NCBI GenBank assembly: GCA_976226885.1
Contig: OZ320320.1
Span: 88,288,001 to 88,352,000, forward strand
Direction: 5' to 3'
DNA length: 64,000 nt
From: Iphione sp. A-MEVVRFRX5
Lineage: Eukaryota
A program made the translations under genes and the position numbers. Shown piece by piece: positions 3,437 through 59,292 of the stretch. The notes beneath the pieces were generated by a model that was not told the DNA's origin, did no database searches, and saw only the letters and a program-made list of their open reading frames with translations. Numbering within the stretch: position 1 is the stretch's first letter; each line of letters opens with the position of its first letter.

Positions 3437-6290
3437 TGAATGAATGAATGAATAGTTTATTGAGTCCTCCACTCATACTTGCACAGTATGCTATTGGTAT
3501 GGAGGGCTCAGTGCCAGTCCTTCAACACTTTATTCTTTGCTGGCCTGACCCTTTACAATCACACTTTACCAGATTTTAGCCAACGCTTTAGAAGCGTAGC
3601 AAAATTACTTCTATCACTTAGTACTAATTCTGCTGGAAGTCGATTCCATTCCTCTGCTCCCATATACGTGGCACTTCTCCTTACTCTTTCATGTTTAGGT
3701 TTATCCAGTTTAATCTGTCCTTGTATTCCCATTCTGGTCCTTCCTCTTACAGTGACACAATAAAATGATAAACAGCACATATCATTAACCACTTTCAACA
3801 AAGCAAATTTACGCCTTTCCCAAACATTTAATATCCCATTACTTCCTAACCAAGCATCTACTTCCTCCCTACTGTCCCATTCATTTAACATACTCCCCCT
3901 AATTGCCCTATACCAAACTGCCTCTAATCTATGCAGGTCCAGTCTCCCTGCTCCCGTAGTTAGCCATAACCCATAGTCAATATGTGGTGTAACTAACGAG
4001 ATAAATAACTTCTTCATAAAAAAATTCCCTAATGTATATTTCATCCTCCTCAACAAAAAACAGACTATTAATTTTCTTAATCTTATTATTAATAAATGCA
4101 CCAAAATTTAATTTATTGTCTATTAAAAATCCCAAAAAATTAAACTCCAAAACCTGCTCCAACAATACCCCACCTATTGTCAAGTCCAATTTAAATCCCT
4201 CTGCCTTACCCACCATCATACATTTGCTTTCACCAAACAATTACTACTACACCATTCCACAATACAATCTAGAGTATATTGAGCCTTTTTTCGTAGTGCC
4301 ATTGCATTTAAAACCCAACTTAAAACTGTTATATCGTCCGCATAAAGTATCAAAGAAGACGGAAATTCAATTGAAAAAATACCATTTATCATTACTAAAA
4401 ACATCCACAGCCCTAATAGTGAGCCTTGAGGTACCCCCTTATCGATGACTGACCAACCCGAATATTTCCCGTTACAAAAAACCTGTTGCTTTCTGTGTGA
4501 TAAATAAGATTCTATCCAATCTACAACTCTACCCTTCATCCCCCAAGACTGTAACATTTTTAATAACAATGTGTGGTTAACCAAATCGAAAGCTTTTGTC
4601 ATGTCTAAAAAAGAAACACTAATATATCTGCCTAAATTAATATTGCTCATTAATTCTAAGACCCCCACCGCTAGTTGCGTACCCCTACCTGACCTAAACC
4701 CAAACTGTTTCTCATTTAATAAAGCATTACCCTCCACATATTCTACCAATTGCCCCCAAACTATCTTCTCTAAAATTTTACCCGGCATGGGTAGCAGGGA
4801 GACTGGCCTGTAATTCCCTCTACTTAAAGGACTCCCCTTTTTAAATAGAGGAATAACAGTGGCTTCCTTCCAGCCATCCGGAAAGACACCTTCCCTCAAC
4901 GACTGGTTAAGAAGCCCTACCCAAAAATGCACTGTCAGTAACATTGCCTCCCTTAGTACCCTACTAGTAATGTCTTTTAACCCTGATGGTTTCATATCTT
5001 TTTGTTGTTTAATCACTTTCACAACTTGACCAACTGAAACCTCCTTGAACATTTTCAGTTTCTATGCGATAATCCACATCCTTCCTATTCGTTTGTTTAC
5101 TAATCTCATCAACACTTTCAATAAACTATGCATTCAAGCTTTCACATACTTTATCAGATAACACATCGTTTCCATCCACTCTCAACGCTTTTTCTTTTCT
5201 CCTGTCCCTCTTCCCAAAAACATACTTATTCAAAACACTCCATACCTTTCTTTCATTTCCCAAAGCCTTTTGCAAGTCATCCCGCACACGTTCCCTACGT
5301 TCTCTAATTACCTGCTGATTTATACTATTTCTATAATAATTTGCTATCCTCCTATAGTCAGTAACTCCAGTGAATCTCCATTTTCTCATAAAATAATCCC
5401 TCTCCCTGCGCATCTCCATTACCCTATGTGAATACCCTACAGACGTTATCTTACCCACTTTCCTATCCTCTAAAGGAGCTATGTCATCCAAAATTTCCTC
5501 AATCTAAGATATCCAAAAGTTCAATTTTTCATTTACTGAGGCATCAATCGGTATATCCCATCTTCTTTTCCTAATCTCATTTTCAAGTTTTACATATGAA
5601 TAGCCTCTGTAACATCTTCGTTTAACTACTTCATAACCCTCCCTATTCCTCCTATGTTTAAAATCGACAAATGTTACCCAGTGATCACTATTCCCCGTAA
5701 CAATCACCCCACTACCTCTATAATGTTTAGTTGAAACATAAATGTGATCCAAACAACTTCCTCGTATGTATGTAGAATGCTTTATCAATTGCTGCAATCC
5801 CATACTACTAGCAAAGTCCTCACACAACTTTCTGTCCCTATTACACTTCATCCAATCCACATTCATATCACCTATTACACAAACTACTCGTCTACCTCTA
5901 TGTCTAATTTTTCCCATCAATTGCACCAAAATATTTAAGAAACTATTTAAATTCCCATCTGGAGCCCTATAAACTAACAATATATATTGCATCTTACGGT
6001 TTCCAGGTTTACAACGTACCATCAAAATATCCCCTTCCCTACCACTATAACATCCCTCATCCACACATTCAGTCTCAAATGATTCATCCACATATAACAA
6101 TACTCCCCCACCCCTTTTTTTATTTGCTTGTACAGTATCCCTATCTTTAACCAAGTTTCTACTATACCCAAAATATTACATTTCCTACTTTTAAATATTA
6201 ATTCTACCTCCCCCAGTTTCCCAAGAATACTCCTGCAGTTCCAGGCTGCGAGCCTAAGAACTGTCATACCAGTGACACAATACAGACAAA
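3437..6290 (-). mobile_element. CR1/L2-group LINE, near-complete but inactivated ORF2 (APE endonuclease + RT) with (TTCA)n tail
   Basis: APE motifs AAWNCRSI, GIVETWL, IGDMN, CLDHIY, SDH (5504-6267); RT motifs NYRPVSLLP, QFGFR, FLDMTKAFD, GVPQGSLLG, YADD (4216-5052); C-terminal WNRLP; AATAAA plus (ATTC)n at 3437-3460; several frameshifts and stops. Confidence 0.95.
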
Positions 6291-36897: not shown

Positions 36898-37935
36898 TCA
36901 GTCTATGAAATGTACATCTCCATAGTAAACATAGCGAGCCAGCTCTCCCAATGTGGAGTTTAGCTTTTTAATACTCTCTGGATTAATTGTAACTCTACGG
37001 AATCTCTTCAGGACATGGACAGCAAAGTTCGATGACCAGTCCCAAAGTTTACCAGGATCAAACATGTAGTCAAGTTCTTGAAGAAAGGGCCTTTGCAGCG
37101 TGTCCCACTCAACGTGGACAAGTTCCGGATGTCTTTTGGCAATAAGCATTGGCACAAGAGTTGAATGTTCGGCCCATATCTGATCATTAAATGTCTTATA
37201 AGAATTCAGCCACATTCGTAGGAATGTTGAATTTGGAATTGAAATTATTATACCATTGTTGAGACGCTGTGAGCTTTCAGCCCCCAAAGTTGTATTATAA
37301 TATAGAAGTGGATCAAAAGACTTTAAACAAAGTACATCTAGATCTATGTAAATGCCACCCATCTCTAAAAGTTTCTCAAGTCGAATGAAATCTGTTTTAT
37401 GCTCTATAACCTTGATCTTGTGTCCAAATACAGATGAGGGCACTTTCACCTCATGAAGCTGTAATTTGTCAACGTTAGCCTTTGCCTTTAGCCACCATCT
37501 GCCACAAGGCTCCCCCGTCTTCCACATAATTATCCGCTCAGGTCTGATGAACTTATGAATGCTCAACATGCTCAGATATTGGAGAAATGTCATCGTACAA
37601 GATCTAGCCTCATGTATCCATATGAGGTGGACAGTTTTTGGAACTGTGGGCTTATTGTTCCTCTTGGCAACATTTGGAAGGGGAGTTTTTTTTTTACGTG
37701 GCCCTCGAAATTCACTGTGTTTCCTCCCCTTGAAATCATTTATGTCCAGCACAGATTTTCCTCCTTCAATATCAGTTTCGTTAGGGAGTTGGTTAGTAGT
37801 AAAATTGTGTGTGCATTGCATAATATTTGATAAAGTGCATTTTAATAAAGGGTGTTTCAGTTTGAGATGGATGACACTACCAATAAGTAAAACCACTGCC
37901 AGCACACAGAGTCCTCTTGACAAGTGTTTAGACAT
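36898..37935 (-). CDS. Glycosyltransferase family 32 (alpha-1,4-Gal/GlcNAc transferase-like), type II membrane protein, single coding exon, 345 aa
   Basis: N-terminal TM (LCVLAVVLLIGSVI), VPKTVHLIW, HKTDFIRLEKLLEMGGIYIDLDV (DxD) and LNNGIII. First ATG at 37935, with an in-frame stop just upstream of the TTG used by the ORF track. Confidence 0.93.
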   Translation of the reverse strand: MSKHLSRGLCVLAVVLLIGSVIHLKLKHPLLKCTLSNIMQCTHNFTTNQLPNETDIEGGKSVLDINDFKGRKHSEFRGPRKKKTPLPNVAKRNNKPTVPKTVHLIWIHEARSCTMTFLQYLSMLSIHKFIRPERIIMWKTGEPCGRWWLKAKANVDKLQLHEVKVPSSVFGHKIKVIEHKTDFIRLEKLLEMGGIYIDLDVLCLKSFDPLLYYNTTLGAESSQRLNNGIIISIPNSTFLRMWLNSYKTFNDQIWAEHSTLVPMLIAKRHPELVHVEWDTLQRPFLQELDYMFDPGKLWDWSSNFAVHVLKRFRRVTINPESIKKLNSTLGELARYVYYGDVHFID

Positions 37936-39199
37936 CAGAGGCAGAAATCTTTTCAAGAAGACAATTCTTTCAGATCATTGAATCTGTATCCTTGCATGAC
38001 AGTATACCGTACTCCATCTGAAAAGATTTTCAAAGGAAGCATTTTAATACATGTCATCAAACTAGCACATTAACAACAAAAGGACTATCATTCCTTTGAA
38101 ATCTAAGGCAAAATATAGCGTTCTATTTGTGTAAGTGTTTAAGAAAATGTATTTCATCCATAGTTTTGTTTGTAAATGTTTATTGTTTGATATTTTCGAT
38201 ATTTGATATTTCTTTATTGACACCAAATCTCTGTATGCAGGTACAAAGTTATCTGTGGTGGCAAAACTGTAGTGGACAGAATAACAATTAACTGATTACA
38301 GAACATGGACAACACAACATTGAATGAACGTGTATCAGATTACATGAAAAGGCACACAACAGAGACACAACATAGACAAACATGGTAACGGTGCAATAGG
38401 TGCCCACTCCCTAACTGGACAGGGCTTCGTGAACTCACAATGCATGTGTAGACAAGAAAAATAGCAACAGAAGATGACAGTCATCACAGCAGGTTGTGGG
38501 CTACATAAATACAGACTAGTAATTACCGAACAGATTTACAGAAATTATCACAAAGACTAGACATGTGACAGGGACAACACATAATATACAGAATATACAC
38601 AGAGTATACACAGAATAGATATAGCATGCCATAACTGGCACACATGTACTCTCAATTCACTTTTGCAATACATTGCTCCTTGCGTCAAGCACTTCCACAA
38701 CACCATGGGATGCTACGATGCAGACAATGTCAGCTCACACTCAAATTCTTCGCACGACATGTACAATTTCAGCATATATGACTCGCAGAAACCACATAGT
38801 TGACACCACTGCAATGAACTTCACGGTTGACAATTGTGTTTATGTTTTGTGGATCTAGCTGGCCATGAAAACTCAAATCCCATCATCTCTTGTGGAGATT
38901 AATGAGCACCATCTCCCATTTTACGGATACTTGGTGATTTTATGATTGGAAGCGATCACATAGTGTTACCTCTATTTAGCGCATGTATGAAGTTCCATAA
39001 ATAAACTTTGGCCAACATTACTGAGCGTTTCCTCATTGACACACATGCGTAATCTTTGTGTTTGAAGTACACTTATCAATTGCCCTATTTACTTGTGGTA
39101 GTAATTGAGCCGTAGGGTATGTTAATGTTGGTGCCTTTTCCTCCCAATGTTTAACTAGCCCTGTGTCACCCGACAACAACCATAGCCTCTTGCGGTATC

Positions 39200-43801: not shown

Positions 43802-44982
43802 CGGCTAATTCAGTATACTCGGTGCATTGCATGAAGCAGACAACATATATGGGCCATTGCAAAAGTAACACAAGTAATCAGTGGTAACCTGGCACTTCAC
43901 CAATGTATCCAGCAAGTCCAATCAGTATCACAACAGTAGCAGTTATTCTAGCTGTTGTTCAACCAAGCAGATTAAATTCAATATACCAACCGTCAATAAT
44001 ATAGGCAAAAAGAGATTTCAATACCGTACAAAATAAAACAGGGTTTTTACCTGCACAGTTCTGGTCCTCGAGTCTGGAAGGTTCTGTTCTGTTGGAGGTA
44101 CTAGTCTGGAGAATGGTGCCGGTGGTGGTAGGTGCTGGCGATGGTGGTAGGTGCTGGTCTGCCTCACCAAGCATGACTAATTTGTTTGCAGTAAGGTGTC
44201 TGTTATGCCTGGGCGCTAGTGGCAGCAAGAAGGACGGACAGTAAGTGCCGTATACTATTTTCAATATTTTGCCCTATTTCTTATGGTAGGTATAATTTAT
44301 ACACGTATAAATCTTCCTTTCCCCACTAGGGGGTTGACAGGTTCCAAACCACCACTGCCACCTGTAGGCATAGCCAGCCAGCTGGTAACCAAGCAACCAT
44401 GTATACATCCCCACTGCCACCAGGTTTCATTTGACCCAAGGTGACCTGGGTCAGCACCAGAGGGAATATTTCCCCCCCCCCCGAAATGTTTGACTCTCCA
44501 GGTGATGCTACATCCCCCCACCAACCGATCACTTCGCAAGAATGGACTGCAATCAGCAGGAAATTAATACACGCGGTATAGTAAAAGTGGCGGTTTATTA
44601 TGAGGACCGGGCACCTTCACTGACTGGCCCCAACATGTTACTGGGGGATGAGCCATATGGACGAGGGGAGTGGCAGGTCGGGCTAGAAGTATTTAACAAG
44701 CAGAGTTTCAGCTGCAAGAGCTGGAAGTCGAGAGGCTGCAGAGGGAGGAGGAGATAGCAAGGCAGACTGAAGCAGGCCAACTGGCAGCTCAGCTTCCGGA
44801 GCTCAAACTGCAATGCAAGCAGCTCTACCTTGAAGGAGAAGGACAGGCCAGGCAAACATCATGGCTACCACGGGTGGGACTAGCGGTCTGCCCCCAGGGT
44901 AACAAGGTGCCACATCCACAGTGAGCCAGGTCTGAGGCATCCAAACCACAGCAGCACGTAAAAGGGAAGAGGTGCATACCCA

Positions 44983-45130
44983 NNNNNNNNNNNNNNNNNN
45001 NNNNNNNNNNNNNNNNNNNNNNNNNNNNNNNNNNNNNNNNNNNNNNNNNNNNNNNNNNNNNNNNNNNNNNNNNNNNNNNNNNNNNNNNNNNNNNNNNNNN
45101 NNNNNNNNNNNNNNNNNNNNNNNNNNNNNN
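44983..45130. other. Assembly gap (N run)
   Basis: Directly visible. Confidence 1.
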
Positions 45131-45895
45131 GGAGTAGGAGGAGGAGGAGGAGCAGGAGGAGGAGAAGGAGCAGGAACAGGAGCAGGAGTAGGAGGAGGAG
45201 GAGCAGGAGGAGCAGGAGGCGCAGGAGGAGGAGGAGGAGCAGGAGAAGGAGGATGGAGGAGGAGGTGGAGGAGGATGAGGGGCAGGAGGAGGAGAAGGAG
45301 CAGGAACAGGAGCAGGAGTAGGAGGAGGAGGAGCAGGAGAAGCAGGAGGAGGAGGAGGATCAGGAGAAGGAGGATGGAGGAGGAGGTGGAGGAGGAGGAG
45401 GAGCAGGAGGAGGAGAAGGAGCAGGAACAGGAGCAGGAGTAGGAGGAGGAGGAGGAGCAGGAGGAGGAGAAGGAGCAGGAACAGGAGCAGGAGTAGGAGG
45501 AGGAGGAGCAGGAGGAGCAGGAGACGCAGGAGGAGGAGGAGGAGCAGGAGAAGGAGGATGGAGGAGGAGGTGGAGGAGGATGAGGGGCAGGAGGAGGAGA
45601 AGGAGCAGGAACAGGAGCAGGAGTAGGAGGAGGAGGAGCAGGAGAAGCAGGAGGAGGAGGAGGAGGAGCAGGAGAAGGAGGATGGAGGAGGAGGTGGAGG
45701 AGGATGAGGAGCAGGAGGAGGATGAGGAGCAGGAGGAGGAGAAGGAGCAGGAACAGGAGCAGGAGTAGGAGGAGGAGGAGAAGGAGCAGGAGAAGGAGGA
45801 TGGAGGAGGAGGTGGAGGAGGAGCAGGAGGAGCAGGAGGAGGAGAAGGAGCAGGAACAGCAGCAGGAGCATGAGCAGGAGGAGGAGGAGGAGAAA
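45131..45895. repeat. Purine-strand (GGA/GCA)n compound satellite
   Basis: Plus strand almost entirely G/A, with a recurring ggagaaggagcaggaacaggagcaggagtagg block. Confidence 0.95.
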
Positions 45896-47079
45896 CAGCC
45901 TCCATCCCTTGGCTTAGGCCGGAGAGACATATTCTGAGCTGCAAGTCATATGGAGAATGACCCTTGTACTATTCGTTTGTCATATCAATTTACATGTATT
46001 TGTATTGATAAAGGCCATGATATACCAATGATATGTATGATATGATTATTGCTGTTTGCTAGCTGTTTTATGTAAATTCATCTCATAATATCTAATTACT
46101 CTGTACCCACTTAAGACATGTCTGAATATACATGAATTGAGTTGAATATGACCTTCTGACAGTTAATCTGAGGATCTATGGATGTGGGCAGAGATCGTAG
46201 ATCATGGTTTTAGTCTTTTCTCTCCTTATGTTATTCCTACCATTTTTACAGATTTTCTTGTCATCATCCATTTTATTCCAGGATTTTATTCCTGGGTGAC
46301 TATGACTTCTACTGTACAAGCAGTTTGTCGCTCGTGGTTCAATAAATCTTGGCTTTTGACCTAGTCTTATCTTTGTCTCTTCTTTTACACACATAAGACC
46401 TCATTGATACAGATGAAAGATTTCAATGCAAACCTTATTTTTAAACCATTTTTTAATGTTTCTACTCTTGTATTTCTTGACACTTTGACCTCGCATTACC
46501 ATAAGTATTGCTCTGTTTTTACAGTACCTTCAGACTTTCTTTAGCGTTGAATTATGAAATTCTGCCAAAAATGGTGCTGTATATTACAATTGAAGTTCTA
46601 TAAAAGACCTTAAAGACCCTCCCCCCATCCCCCTTGTAGTGAACGGCCTGTACATTATGACTGCCTCTGTCTCTCAGCGGAGCTCCCAGAGTTGTCTCGT
46701 AAAATTACAGTTTCATGGCATCTAGTTCCCTAGGATCTCACCAGGGGGCTATGCTGTTCAACTAAATTTGGAAGTGTGTCAGGTATTTGTCCCATAGCCA
46801 CTGCTGCGTGTTGAGCATTGCTGACCCGATATAACCTTGATTCTGAGCGGTATTATATAGAAACATATTGGAATAATTATTCTCTCAATATATATATATA
46901 TATATATATATTATGTGTCTCCAGAGTGAACAGAACTGGGTATGAGTATTATCTGAGCGACAAAAGTATTATTCTTTTCTCAGGTTTGTGGAAAAAAACT
47001 ACTTCCCAGCTGACAGCATGAAGTACGAGAGGGGAGGCTTACCAAAGTAGCTACTGCTGGCTAGGGCAGACTCCCTCCC

Positions 47080-54330: not shown

Positions 54331-56904
54331 TACCTCCTAACATCCTCACAACACCCCACAACAACCACAACCTCCCAACCTGTGTGACAGCGAGATTAAC
54401 ATACCCTTCTGGGGAAGGCAGCCAAGCTTGGTGCAGCACTCACTATAAACAATGGATCTGGTCAGTTCTGTTCTGATTATGTCAACAAATGAAGCCATTA
54501 CTATTACCTCATGTGATATACATGTACTATTAAAATGACCTGCTATTTGCACTCATTACCTCACTACAGTACCCCACTATTCCCTTACATAATCCTCCAA
54601 CCCTAAGAACACCCATAACTTCTACATCCTAACAGTATCCACCACCTTCCTAAACTACCCACTACCCCCCCCCCCCCACAATAGCTTCTATCTCCAGACA
54701 CCAGCCATTATCTCCCTACAATACTCACTAACCCCCCTGCCCTCCACACTATTCTCCATCTCCTAACACTACCCACTTCATAACCAGTAGTACTTGGAGG
54801 GGAAAGTATAATTGTATTCAGGTATATAACAAGCATAGACTCTTTGTGATACCAACATCTGGGTTCAAAGGAATTTTACGAGTTGAGTTCCAACATTTGT
54901 CGAGGAAGTCCAGTATGACACAATTAAGTTCTTACAAGAAAATGAAATAGCATCCAGTGGAATCTCTATTTCCAGCCACTCTAATGTGCGACAATTCTCT
55001 ATTTGAGACCAGCTGGAGTGGAGACAGAAGTCTTGATTTCTTATATTAACAGTAACCTATTTGAAACCAAACACACTAATAAGACTACGTCAGTTCGGAT
55101 GGTGGCAAATAGGGTTTCTACTGTTATTCTTCTACACATGCAGCGGTCCACTACCAAGTGCAGGGGGTCAGTGAGTAGTTCACCTGTGTAACCTATCCTG
55201 ATAACCCTATGATAATTTAATACATGCAGAACAAATTGTATTAGATCTCTCATGCCAACAAAAGCAATAGCCTTGAAATAATTGTATATATTATCCTTGT
55301 AATAAACATTTTCCATTTCCGTTTAGATATTTGCACTTAGCTGGGATATGAAACCCATATCATCTTGATTAGACTGTTGCTTTCCGGCTTTTGTTTTGCT
55401 CATTGGTCAGGTCCCGGATAGTTGATGTTGATACCTGAACCCTCAGATGTGGTCCGTTCCTTAGGCAGACAATTGATCTATTTGTAGTTGCTTCTGGTTA
55501 GAAACAATCACAAACAAAAAACTCGTTTCAAACAGAGGAATGTTCTCCCTGTCGGATTGTTACCACATTTACCTATTTATTTGGACAATATGATGGTTGA
55601 TTTTTATCCTTTTCTATCCTTGTATGATTATCATTGAATTAACTTGATTACAACTTTTTCCTTCTCACTGTTGAGAATACATATTTATGACTATGTAAAT
55701 AGACAAAATGGATATGGTGTGCTCGGATGAGGCCAAAGATGAGAACCAAGAATCCCAAACAAGGCTACAAAGCTGACATCGGTATCAAATTGGTACCTGA
55801 CTGAGTCTTTGGCCTCATCTAGGCTCATCATACTCGGTTTGTCTTTACTCCATCCCCGAATAATGAATTAAATCCGTTTTAAACTGTCCCTACCTCAGTT
55901 GAAAAAACAACTGCCCGCTGCCATCTTGTCTGCTTGCCTCTGGGAATATATTCTAGGTTCAAAGCTATAATTTGAATACTCGGTTGAATAACTATACAAA
56001 ATGACTGGAGAAATCGAATCCGGGGATAATTATGCATATTTACAAATTGTTAATTGAAAACTCTATTGTTTATGGCAGGTTAAAAAGGAATTTATGCATA
56101 CAATAGGCAATATTAATTTCAAGGTCACTGAACCACGGATTCCTGCTCCCACAAAAAGTGATATATGAGCAAAACATGAACATATCAAGTGATTAAAGCA
56201 TTCAAGGTATTTTTGATATTCAAAAGCATAATAACTAGATTAATTCATGTGCACAGATAGCTTCTGTTTAGTTCCGGAAATTCTGAGTTGAGATGGTCCA
56301 CCATTTTGTTTGAGTATACGAACATGCACTTGATCAGGCAGACAAATTTTCCTTAACCCCCGCCCCCCCCGAGTAGGCAACCTTACTGCATCCCAGCATA
56401 GGGCTCGAGGCTAGAGCAAACGTGAAGGATATCTGTTGACATTATACTTTGAATGAAATCATTCATGACAGAAGTGTTTCCACACTTTTAAAAACGCCCT
56501 TTCAGGTCAACAGGCTTGGAAATAACATATTTTTCTATTCTATTCCACCCTACTGAAACCTTTCCTCCCAGAATTGTTTTTTCGATATTTTGGGAACCAA
56601 TTTAGTGTTTTCACGCGTTTCTTTGATGGGGTCTGACCTTTTATTTAATACTAGTGTTATTACGATTTAACCAGTAGAAAATGGACGCTGGTAGTTGCAG
56701 ACCAGCTTATACAGCTGTGTGCGTTTTCCGTCCCCAAAACAATAATTTTCCGTATTTTTCAGATTCAGAAAAAAATTATTTCCTACTGTTCAACATGACA
56801 ATGACAATAGAAAATGGAAAGGAAACGCCTGATGAATCAATATTCAGTCATATATTTTAAGAGCTTATTAAAAACCTTTTTTCTTTTCTAGGTGAAGGAG
56901 AATT

Positions 56905-59292
56905 ATGGCCAGTCAGCAGCTAATGTGTGTGTGGCAAGCAGTCTATGCCACGGACCCTACAATCGACAAGCTTGAGGTGTTCTATGATACTGTCAAAAAA
57001 GTCACAGCAACATTTTCTGATATTCCTGGGGTCACATTCTCACCAGAAGCATATGATGATTTTTATCCTGAAAAAGATGTCAATTTCACGCAATATGTTC
57101 AGTACACACACAAGCTGCTCATACCTAGTGAAGAGGACTACAAGGAGGTGACTGATGCTATTGAACTCCATTGTTGGCAAATCGCAAAGAAGTATTATAA
57201 GCTGAGGAATTATGGTGTGAAAGAAGAGCAAGCTGAGATGATGTGGAGGGTATTCAATCGCATCTGTGAACCAAAGGGTGTGCCTCCTAAGCTGGAGGTG
57301 AAAGATGCTGACTGGCTCATTGGGAAGATCTGTGCCAATCTGGGACAGGAATGGAAACCAGGCAGCATTCCCCAGAAGCTCCCCTATTGGGACCTGATGA
57401 CAGTCCTGAGTGATAAGTGCTTCAAAAAGGCAAATCAACTGGCTGTCCGCAGAGCAATCAGGCGTCTACATTCATGGCTGGTTGAGGAAGTCCACAAGAC
57501 AGGCTGGCTGTTTAAGAGAACACAGCATAAGGCCAATTGGACACCTTGGCGGAAGCGTTGGGTGGTGCTCACACCAGAAATCTTAGGCTGTTATAATTCT
57601 CGAAGGAAGGAACGATTAACTGGTGAGCTAGACATGGGCCCCATAGCAAAGGTTAAGGAGGTGCAATCCCCTGGAAATCGTTATCCTGCACGTCTTAGGG
57701 TCACTGGTGAACAACAGAGAGTGTTTGAGCTGTCTTGTGGTGATGACAAGAAGAAGGGTGATTGGATGGCTGCCCTGAATGAAATTATCGAAACAGCCAA
57801 TGAGGGAACCACTCCAATACGTGCCATGCTCCAAGAGAGGGAAGAAATGAAGAAGAAGGGCAAGGATGCCTCCATCACTGATGCTGCTAAGACAGGCAGT
57901 TCCACGGCAAGTAAGGTAACCATACAGAAAGATGAGGACTCAGACCCTGATGATGATGATGAGCCTGAGACCATTCTCATGACACCAGTGGATGACAATG
58001 ATGATCCCAATGTAAAGGAGCGCCTTGACAAGATCCGAGCAGTTTTTGACCAGATTGATATCAATGGAAATGGAAACATCGACCTGGAGGAATTTAAGAA
58101 GTTCATGAAAGGCATGGGTCTCAGCATGACAGCTGCTGAGATTGAAACCACCTTCTATGGCATTGACACAAGTGGTAATAAAGTGGTTACTCTTGATGAG
58201 TTCTCAAAATACTTCATGGAGACGGTGATGGATGATGGGACCAGCCAAAAACCGGGAGATTCCCGCATGCAAGCTGCCTTCCTACAGGCTGACAAGGATG
58301 GCACTGGAAGTGTTGATTTTCAAGAGTTTACAGAGTACATCTGGGAGAAGAAGGGTGCAGCTCGCATGGGTAACCTGGTGGAAGCTTTCAAGAAACTCTC
58401 TAAGGGATCTAAATCAATATCTGCCAAGGAGTTCCAAAAGTTTTTGGGAGAAGATAATGAACTGTCAAAAATCATCAAATCAGAGAAAAAGAAGAAGAAA
58501 AGTAAAGATCAAAAGCAAATAGCAGGAAAGCTGAAGAATATGTATGATACAGCTGATTCCTCCGAGTTGGCAGGATTTTTAGAAGACAGATGGAAGGCTT
58601 GGTCTAACTTCAAGCGTAAAGATAAAGATGGAAACATAATCATGACGGGAAATAAAAATATGGTAGCATCAATTATGCCTGGGGAGTATAGTATGGTAGA
58701 TCTGGCTTGCTGGAGTGATGTTCCTCCGATCAAGCCGGCTCATGCTGTCTTCAATGCTCGATGGATTTCAGGGAAAAAGCCAGGACAACTGGGAGACCTC
58801 ATCTTCCCTCATGATACAATCACCAAGGTGCCTATTGAGGTGGCCACTACTGAATTCCTTCGCTACTATGGTGCCTGCATTGCCAACAACTCAGCAGTGG
58901 ATGTCTCACTCACTATTCGTAATGGGATTCAAGACTTCACATATGAGAATGGCTACTTGGATAAATATGTTAAGGGGGTTTGTGGGGGTGGTACCCTTGA
59001 AGTTCACCCATTCCCCCACATTGATTGTCCATTTGTGCGGGATAGTGGCTTATTCATGGTGGGGAGGTTTTTCGATGAAGAAATGCATATCACAGCATTC
59101 AAGGTCCCTCTACGCCATAGTCTCTACAGTCCACCATGGACCATGCACATAAATGATTACCTGAAGGGAACCTGGCGTACACTGTTTTCTGGGGAAGTTC
59201 CACCTGATGCTGTTCGTCTCATGAAGCAAAAAACCAAAGGTGATGACACCAATCTGCAGCCATTTGCCTTTGAGTTTTACCACCCAGAATGA
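56905..59292 (+). CDS. SWAP-70/DEF6-family protein with unusual architecture: SWAP70 N-domain, PH, acidic linker, 3-4 EF-hands, cupin-like C-terminal domain (795 aa, single coding exon)
   Basis: Colinear motifs vs SWAP-70 (CWQIAKK, EEQAEMMWRVFN, LIGKICANLGQEW, EVHKTGWLFKR...WRKRWVVL, FELSCGDDKKKGDW); EF loops DINGNGNIDLEE, DTSGNKVVTLDE and DKDGTGSVDFQE; ttttcttttctAG acceptor 13 nt before the ATG with an in-frame TGA (5' UTR intron). Confidence 0.9.
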   Translation: MASQQLMCVWQAVYATDPTIDKLEVFYDTVKKVTATFSDIPGVTFSPEAYDDFYPEKDVNFTQYVQYTHKLLIPSEEDYKEVTDAIELHCWQIAKKYYKLRNYGVKEEQAEMMWRVFNRICEPKGVPPKLEVKDADWLIGKICANLGQEWKPGSIPQKLPYWDLMTVLSDKCFKKANQLAVRRAIRRLHSWLVEEVHKTGWLFKRTQHKANWTPWRKRWVVLTPEILGCYNSRRKERLTGELDMGPIAKVKEVQSPGNRYPARLRVTGEQQRVFELSCGDDKKKGDWMAALNEIIETANEGTTPIRAMLQEREEMKKKGKDASITDAAKTGSSTASKVTIQKDEDSDPDDDDEPETILMTPVDDNDDPNVKERLDKIRAVFDQIDINGNGNIDLEEFKKFMKGMGLSMTAAEIETTFYGIDTSGNKVVTLDEFSKYFMETVMDDGTSQKPGDSRMQAAFLQADKDGTGSVDFQEFTEYIWEKKGAARMGNLVEAFKKLSKGSKSISAKEFQKFLGEDNELSKIIKSEKKKKKSKDQKQIAGKLKNMYDTADSSELAGFLEDRWKAWSNFKRKDKDGNIIMTGNKNMVASIMPGEYSMVDLACWSDVPPIKPAHAVFNARWISGKKPGQLGDLIFPHDTITKVPIEVATTEFLRYYGACIANNSAVDVSLTIRNGIQDFTYENGYLDKYVKGVCGGGTLEVHPFPHIDCPFVRDSGLFMVGRFFDEEMHITAFKVPLRHSLYSPPWTMHINDYLKGTWRTLFSGEVPPDAVRLMKQKTKGDDTNLQPFAFEFYHPE

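Follow-up and report, generated by a model that had tools for sequence, protein, structure and literature searches.

We characterised a gene in a 64,000-nt stretch of the Iphione sp. genome (contig OZ320320.1; hereafter, the window) whose product joins a SWAP-70-like N-terminal half, a calmodulin-like EF-hand block and a cupin-fold C-terminal domain, an architecture that appears to be undescribed but is not unique to this genome. The complete coding sequence (CDS) lies on the plus strand at 56905..59292 as one exon: 795 codons, beginning with ATG, and a stop. At 795 aa, this open reading frame (ORF) is by far the longest in the window, none other being comparable in size. It contains neither an N nor a stop, and at 42% G+C an open frame of 795 codons cannot, by inference, have arisen by chance. 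Its predicted N-terminus, MASQQLMCVWQ, lined up with the starts of the orthologues in the alignment.

All modules of the protein are encoded on the plus strand, and we regard their assignment as near-certain. An all-helical N-domain that resembles the N-terminus of SWAP-70, identified by AlphaFold and an Atlas fold search (residues 1–195, 56905..57489), is followed by a pleckstrin homology (PH) domain (residues 196–295, 57490..57789; Pfam PF00169, E = 6.5e-13). A poorly conserved acidic linker (residues 301–369, 57805..58011) leads to an EF-hand region matched by Pfam EF-hand_7, EF-hand_6 and EF-hand_1 (residues 370–520, 58012..58464), and the protein ends with a C-terminal domain (C-domain; residues 525–795, 58477..59289) of an unnamed family, in which two helices and β elements precede a cupin barrel. 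An earlier reading of this DNA from its letters alone (the sequence-only reading) had placed a PH domain, EF-hands and an enzyme-like domain in a single ORF; the Pfam PH and EF-hand models and the cupin fold of the C-domain bear this out.

Upstream of the gene, a polypyrimidine tract (56875–56889) and an AG (56890–56891) form a putative 3′ splice acceptor (56875..56891, plus strand) 13 nt before the ATG. An acceptor-like site was present 4–15 nt upstream of the ATG in all six loci whose sequence we read, the window included: at 12–13 nt in L001, L003 and L004, at 4 nt in the Lingula locus L009 and, less cleanly, at 15 nt in the Ostrea locus L010. Because the polypyrimidine-AG recurs ahead of the ATG in these six loci, an intron in the 5′ untranslated region (5′-UTR) is suggested. 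The gene probably has a conserved 5′-UTR intron and an upstream non-coding exon, only its coding part being intronless. A tblastn search of the window for paralogues returned the gene itself as the sole match. An 'EF-hand gene' at 17–21 kb of the window, considered as a relative, was rejected, being unrelated at E 1e-3.

The N-terminal half, the linker and the EF-hands

The SWAP-70/DEF6 (SLAT) proteins are PIP3 (phosphatidylinositol trisphosphate)-binding, Rac-regulating adaptors, and the sequence-only reading had likened the front of the window protein to them. We modelled residues 1–305 with AlphaFold on a 4-sequence alignment and obtained a confident, all-helical N-domain, with a predicted local distance difference test score (pLDDT) of about 85–93. 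When this half was compared by fold with the ESM Atlas cluster representatives, the two top rows were SWAP-70 clusters (PF25530, EF-hand_SWAP70_N, plus PH); the best reached a template modelling score (TM) of 0.56 over residues 1–288, with 220 residues aligned, the second reached 0.50, and all remaining rows stayed at or below 0.41. The best PDB relative of the PH domain was 2dn6 (KIAA0640 protein, which we take to be human SWAP-70; E = 3.5e-6). Much as in SWAP-70/DEF6, a helical, putatively EF-hand-like N-domain is directly followed by the PH domain, and both have a basic β1–β2 segment, represented in our family alignment by the conserved residues K204, R205, K217 and R218. The proposed likeness to SWAP-70/DEF6 is thus upheld by the leading Atlas clusters and by the PH domain's closest relative.

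At the level of sequence, PF25530 matched two of 16 family N-halves (best E = 2.1e-5), below the Pfam cut-off; on residues 4–91 of Lingula XP_013385903.1 it gave E = 4.3e-5, with 23.9 bits where the cut-off is 27. It was the sole non-PH family under 1e-3 across the 16 N-halves, and residues 1–195 of the window protein matched no Pfam family up to E 10. A Foldseek comparison of the N-half with the PDB returned generic helical-plus-PH proteins only (such as GRK2 and DH-PH; TM about 0.25), and no solved SWAP-70 N-domain was seen among these matches. Word-indexed protein searches, run with residues 1–300 and with a 16-sequence full-length profile, returned family members and EF-hand proteins only and never proposed SWAP-70; an Atlas feature search with the N-domain alone gave a single, meaningless match at 0.75. 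Judged by its model, the N-half resembles SWAP-70 in its fold and in the order of its domains, a likeness that sequence supports weakly; the protein is partly SWAP-70-like at its front end, yet no member of the SWAP-70 family.

Behind the PH domain the two proteins part ways. SWAP-70 continues with a coiled-coil/DH-like region and a C-terminal F-actin-binding tail (PMC3595256). In contrast, the window protein has neither; the linker, four EF-hands and the cupin stand in their place, and its C-terminus is cupin barrel to the last residues. No helix of coiled-coil length follows the PH domain, whose C-terminal helix (281–300) gives way to the linker and EF-hands, in agreement with the earlier remark that the coiled-coil tail of SWAP-70/DEF6 is absent. 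The window gene further differs from SWAP-70 in that its N-domain falls under the PF25530 threshold in every family member and in that its CDS is a single exon.

The linker, correctly described before as acidic, holds 13 Asp in 69 residues and is the least conserved stretch of the 16-sequence family alignment (15.6% mean identity); in the N-half model, which ends at residue 305, pLDDT is low from residue 301 onwards. Over residues 375 to about 480, Pfam detected EF-hand_7 (PF13499; E = 7.6e-18), EF-hand_6 (3.5e-17) and EF-hand_1 (1.2e-12), and a PDB sequence search with residues 370–477 returned centrin and calmodulin (E about 1e-9). We read the individual loops, all on the plus strand, against the same family alignment. 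The EF1 loop (residues 385–396, 58057–58092; DINGNGNIDLEE) and the EF3 loop (residues 463–474, 58291–58326; DKDGTGSVDFQE) are canonical. The EF2 loop (residues 421–432, 58165–58200; DTSGNKVVTLDE) is near-canonical, with Lys for Gly at loop position 6, and the EF4 loop (about residues 499–510, 58399–58434) is degenerate, its acidic ligands lost. The count of three canonical loops plus one degenerate loop, made earlier from the letters, was therefore essentially right. With its paired helix-loop-helix units and 12-residue D-x-[DNS]-x-[DNST]-G...E loops, the block has the make-up of a calmodulin-like sensor, and two to three of the four EF-hands would be competent for Ca2+.

The C-terminal domain and its putative metal site

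Of all modules of the protein, the C-domain is the best conserved, with 45% mean identity compared with 28–34% for the N-domain, PH domain and EF-hands. Its model and profile were built on a 78-sequence alignment; the model (pLDDT 92.3, predicted TM-score 0.80) comprises two long helices, some β elements and a β barrel. The barrel, a cupin according to the predicted model and its structural matches, occupies about residues 640–794 (58822–59286, plus strand). The sequence-only reading had expected a globular, enzyme-like C-terminal domain of ∼260 aa here, and the confidently modelled, well conserved cupin barrel agrees with that expectation.

We compared the model with 48,161 PDB representatives using VIA-align, independently of Foldseek. 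The top match was the ureidoglycolate lyase AllA of Escherichia coli (1yqc_A; Z 10.5, root-mean-square deviation (rmsd) 3.2 Å, 130 of 160 residues), which was the sole match at Z ≥8, followed by DUF4867 (9gyy; Z 7.9) and, at Z ≤7.5, by sugar ketoisomerases, acireductone dioxygenase, RmlC-type epimerases and other cupins. All VIA-align matches listed at Z ≥5 were cupin or jelly-roll barrels, and the C-domain barrel is a double-stranded β-helix. Foldseek likewise placed the AllA family (2bdr, 1xsq and 1yqc) in the lead, together with 9gyy, at weak E values from 2.7e-3. In the Atlas, the best fold match was a bacterial hypothetical cluster (TM 0.62/0.67, rmsd 2.7 Å), and a language-model search returned bacterial hypothetical proteins of 270–285 aa (score 0.94), a minority of them with DUF4867.

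Sequence models did not reach the domain. It matched nothing in Pfam up to E 10, with PF04115 and PF16161 included in the search, and nothing in NCBIfam. PF16161 was also unmatched in 20 C-domain homologues scanned against Pfam at 0.01 to 0.1, and the viral structure library BFVD yielded nothing significant. Searching exhaustively with HMMER and the C-domain by itself, we collected 290 clusters (50% identity) at E ≤1e-3, 47 of them at E ≤1e-30. Because sequence models (Pfam, NCBIfam, the PDB profile search and hhalign) match nothing, we treat the C-domain as an unnamed cupin-superfamily family of ∼290 clusters, structurally nearest, as judged from its model, to AllA and DUF4867.

Both neighbours differ from it. 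The C-domain has the AllA-type cupin fold, and AllA (PF04115; 1yqc, 1xsq, 2bdr) provides the best barrel match; however, the C-domain has no sequence similarity to AllA, carries ∼115 extra N-terminal residues and has different conserved motifs. DUF4867/SftX-SqvB proteins (PF16161; 9gyy) are cupin metalloproteins of sulfoglycolysis clusters. They provide the second fold match, and their ligand positions have the sequence spacing of the putative ligands of the C-domain, E-x-H-x3-[E/H]...H, but form a 2His–2Glu set where the C-domain has 3His–1Glu; PF16161 does not match the C-domain and the genomic contexts differ.

The putative metal-binding tetrad (58999..59148, plus strand) consists of E699 (58999–59001), H701 (59005–59007), H705 (59017–59019) and H748 (59146–59148). 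These four positions read E-H-H-H in about 72 of the 78 diverse homologues, from bacteria (Stappia) to animal fusions, the window protein included. In the DUF4867 crystal structure from Bacillus megaterium, Fe is held at the barrel centre by Glu97, His99, Glu103 and His150 (PMC11968277), and the spacing E699-x-H701-x3-H705...H748 parallels that of E97, H99, E103 and H150. In our model, the tetrad residues are located on or beside strands 173–176, 181–185 and 223–225 (segment numbering). A 3His–1Glu metal centre is therefore predicted, and probable. R571, W620, T648, Y655, Y684, N750, D751, Y752, W757 and R758 are also strongly conserved across the 78 sequences and could, speculatively, line a pocket for an anionic substrate.

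Two paralogues with the full architecture lack the tetrad: P0124 reads H-Q-A-F and P0037 reads D-H-H-Y at these positions. Both sit on long or separate branches of the C-domain tree, as pseudo-enzymes usually do, and they are likely pseudo-enzyme copies. The EF loops of P0124, which is encoded on ENA contigs of 2.1–9.4 Mb, are degenerate as well.

Proposed function and comparison with known proteins

Taken together, the modules point to a membrane-targeted cupin metalloenzyme controlled by Ca2+ and phosphoinositides, a reading that we hold with moderate confidence. By analogy with SWAP-70, the N-domain and PH domain would together recruit the protein to membrane rich in phosphoinositides and perhaps to small GTPases, the N-half in this way setting the location of the enzyme. 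The calmodulin-like EF-hand block would sense Ca2+, and the EF-hands, adjacent to the cupin, could switch its activity or access with Ca2+. The cupin barrel with its predicted 3His–1Glu centre would act as a metal-dependent enzyme on a small, probably anionic metabolite. Metal binding, catalysis, regulation by Ca2+ and lipid, and the nature of the substrate we infer from motifs and predicted folds. More tentatively, such proteins may form a new class of second-messenger-gated enzymes, metabolic or signalling, in which a phosphoinositide-recruited, Ca2+-switched cupin makes or destroys a small-molecule signal at spiralian cell membranes. If so, the catalytic domain would come from an unnamed cupin family common to marine bacteria, dinoflagellates and possibly giant viruses.

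Several results weigh against the proposed enzyme. At its front end, the PH part of the N-half model was of moderate confidence (pLDDT 54–73), and PF25530 did not match the window protein even at E 10; the 'motif-by-motif' alignment with the SWAP-70/DEF6 N-domain asserted by the sequence-only reading hence does not hold, and the likeness is one of fold. At its other end, the C-domain profile matched none of the PDB sequences, and comparing the 78-sequence profile with E. coli AllA by hhalign yielded a probability of only 0.09. The equivalence of the tetrad with the DUF4867 site is drawn from sequence spacing and secondary-structure position only, and no activity is known even for DUF4867, which is the nearest among families with a metal structure (PMC11968277). 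Finally, the gene contexts of the bacterial homologues are mixed and point to no substrate; we rejected substrate inference from these neighbourhoods, as they are too heterogeneous.

A rival reading is a protein that does not catalyse anything, namely a signalling scaffold in which the cupin is a metal or ligand sensor or a protein-binding module, comparable to auxin-binding protein or to regulator domains of the cupin type, making the whole a SWAP-70-like adaptor with Ca2+ and small-ligand inputs. Many cupins are non-enzymes (PMC11968277), auxin-binding protein is among the VIA-align matches (1lr5), DUF4867 carries a metal and a bound ligand with no detectable activity, and SWAP-70 itself is an adaptor (PMC3595256). 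We nevertheless consider a scaffold unlikely. The tetrad and the residues surrounding it are strongly conserved from bacterial stand-alone proteins to animal fusions, which looks more like an active site, and the bacterial homologues are encoded beside transporters, as catabolic enzymes are. Such adjacency was present in three of four contexts of stand-alone bacterial homologues: the Stappia gene comes directly after an NhaC-type antiporter, and elsewhere the gene follows an MFS transporter; LysR regulators and various oxidoreductases are encoded in the vicinity.

Among known systems, the candidate enzyme resembles phospholipase C (PLC)-delta by design only, both combining a PH domain, EF-hands and a catalytic domain. 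A feature search of the Atlas with residues 1–300 gave a weak recall of PLC PH/EF modules (score 0.77–0.85); in contrast to PLC, the window protein has no X/Y or C2 domains, and the cupin is its presumed catalytic module. It would then be an independent second case of PH, EF-hands and a catalytic domain in one protein, this time with a cupin, and as such relevant to the evolution of signalling. In vertebrate immune cells, the SWAP-70 N-domain and PH domain are known to serve as an actin/Rac adaptor module; in spiralians, a SWAP-70-like unit of this kind seems to be reused to target what is probably a Ca2+-regulated enzyme. What we describe is a set of known signalling modules on an unnamed cupin branch and not a categorically new system. 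The cupin family itself, with ∼290 clusters and a near-invariant 3His–1Glu set, offers a clean target for enzyme discovery.

Conservation and origin of the gene, and other features of the window

A word-indexed database search returned three full-length relatives of the window protein (99% coverage, 37–43% identity), called as uninterrupted ORFs on megabase contigs of ENA assembly ERZ25767047, which holds at least four paralogous loci. When the retrieved proteins were screened one by one for the modules of the window protein, at least 17 showed N-domain, PH domain, EF-hands and C-domain in identical order. The named members are from Tegillarca granosa (KAJ8315717.1 and KAJ8315711.1), Lingula anatina (XP_013385903.1), Pinctada imbricata (KAK3086147.1 and KAK3085987.1) and Ostrea edulis (XP_048751565.2). 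The four-module family is spiralian, comprising annelid, mollusc and brachiopod proteins, and the gene is conserved and probably functional, with a fixed order of modules.

The sequence-only reading had not recognised the architecture. It is already present in public databases for bivalves and a brachiopod, without a name: the orthologues are annotated as 'uncharacterized' or 'hypothetical' proteins, or in UniRef as 'Calmodulin'. That the fusion is undescribed agrees with our literature searches, in which we found no paper joining SWAP70, EF-hand and cupin, none joining ureidoglycolate, EF-hand and pleckstrin homology, and none citing any of six orthologue gene or protein identifiers.

Our census also contained 24 'EF-hand + C-domain' proteins among those retrieved, many of them on contigs of about 2 kb. 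One is Lingula XP_013390073.1 (555 aa; L011:3197-5668, LFEI02001013.1), whose ORF stays open for a further 268 codons in the 5′ direction; these encode an N-domain and a PH domain. With a start (MPGEQLVCVWQ) at about 3242, the locus encodes a four-module protein of about 807 aa that aligns end to end with the full-length Lingula paralogue (52% identity). A PH-less form as a natural architecture is therefore unproven, the Lingula case being a truncated gene model and others being on ∼2-kb contigs. Our analysis corrects this gene model as well as the UniRef label 'Calmodulin'. A smaller discrepancy concerns P0002, whose called start omits an in-frame upstream ATG (L004:5984-6003, MSGQRLMCVWQ...), leaving the database protein six residues short; the upstream sequence agrees with the N-termini of all orthologues. 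On a 55.3-Mb contig of Tegillarca granosa, family members carry the nearby locus tags KUTeg_007861, _007862 and _007867, which suggests a tandem cluster.

Outside the four-module proteins, the C-domain is found as stand-alone homologues of 250–290 aa in the marine alphaproteobacteria Stappia taiwanensis (WP_181760933.1) and S. indica (WP_224909835.1) and in a bdelloid rotifer, and in fused or stand-alone forms in Symbiodinium and MMETSP transcripts. In a quick, unrooted maximum-likelihood tree of 78 C-domain rows, a long branch with support 99 separated 12 prokaryote/virus-type rows from 66 eukaryote-type rows. The animal proteins lay inside a clade of 44 rows, next to protist-type clades of which one includes Symbiodinium, and not within bacteria. 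A recent transfer from bacterium to animal is not supported by this tree; a transfer further back in time, or losses elsewhere among animals, may have occurred.

One stand-alone homologue among the prokaryote-type rows, P0153 (253 aa), is AT-rich and is encoded on metagenomic contigs (L014:1-12762 and L015) with ankyrin-repeat, SNF2, DEAD-box helicase, TPD and PriCT_2 primase neighbours; its contig looks like that of a giant-virus genome and not of a bacterium. The composition of P0153, P0146 and P0152 is aberrant.

This distribution bears on how the gene arose. A horizontally acquired bacterial (or algal) cupin gene, or a retrocopy, could have been joined to a fragment of SWAP-70 plus a calmodulin-like block, an account that concerns origin only and is compatible with the proposed function. 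The C-domain is in register with complete stand-alone proteins of 270 aa from marine alphaproteobacteria such as Stappia, the named animal members are patchily distributed (only spiralians and a bdelloid rotifer), and each species checked has its CDS in one exon. This holds for Lingula XP_013385903.1 (2,439 nt, 812 aa) and the second Lingula locus, and for Ostrea (2,295 nt, 764 aa) and Pinctada (2,376 nt, 791 aa). Still, we judge this origin improbable, as the tree places the animal proteins beside protists, across the long branch from the prokaryote/virus-type rows. Because the single-exon state is common to Lingula, Ostrea, Pinctada and this worm, it is ancient and predates the split of these phyla. 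Hallmarks of retroposition cannot survive in a state so old, and the probable 5′-UTR intron also speaks against a retrocopy. The step from 'intronless' to 'retro-chimeric' taken by the sequence-only reading consequently does not stand in that form: a recent retro-chimera is not supported, and a retro-chimeric origin in general is neither supported nor excluded. That the ORF is an artefact, through misassembly or read-through of two or three neighbouring genes, is next to impossible, since it is free of N and stops and since uninterrupted, collinear orthologues in at least five independent assemblies (Lingula, Ostrea, Pinctada and Tegillarca, besides the paralogous loci of ERZ25767047) rule out the misassembly that had earlier been allowed for.

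Elsewhere in the window, two adjacent ORFs on the minus strand (4216–6154) carry RVT_1 (E = 7.8e-27) and endonuclease/exonuclease/phosphatase signatures and are a remnant of a retrotransposon of the long interspersed nuclear element (LINE) type. The segment 44001–46000 shows strong strand skew (GC skew 0.40, AT skew 0.35) at a GC content of 0.51 and is probably a low-complexity or repeat tract; the two overlapping long ORFs within it (44803–45930, minus strand) had no Pfam match. A 352-aa ORF on the minus strand (36898–37956), possibly a further single-exon gene, has a glycosyltransferase DXD sugar-binding region (PF04488, E = 5.8e-10).

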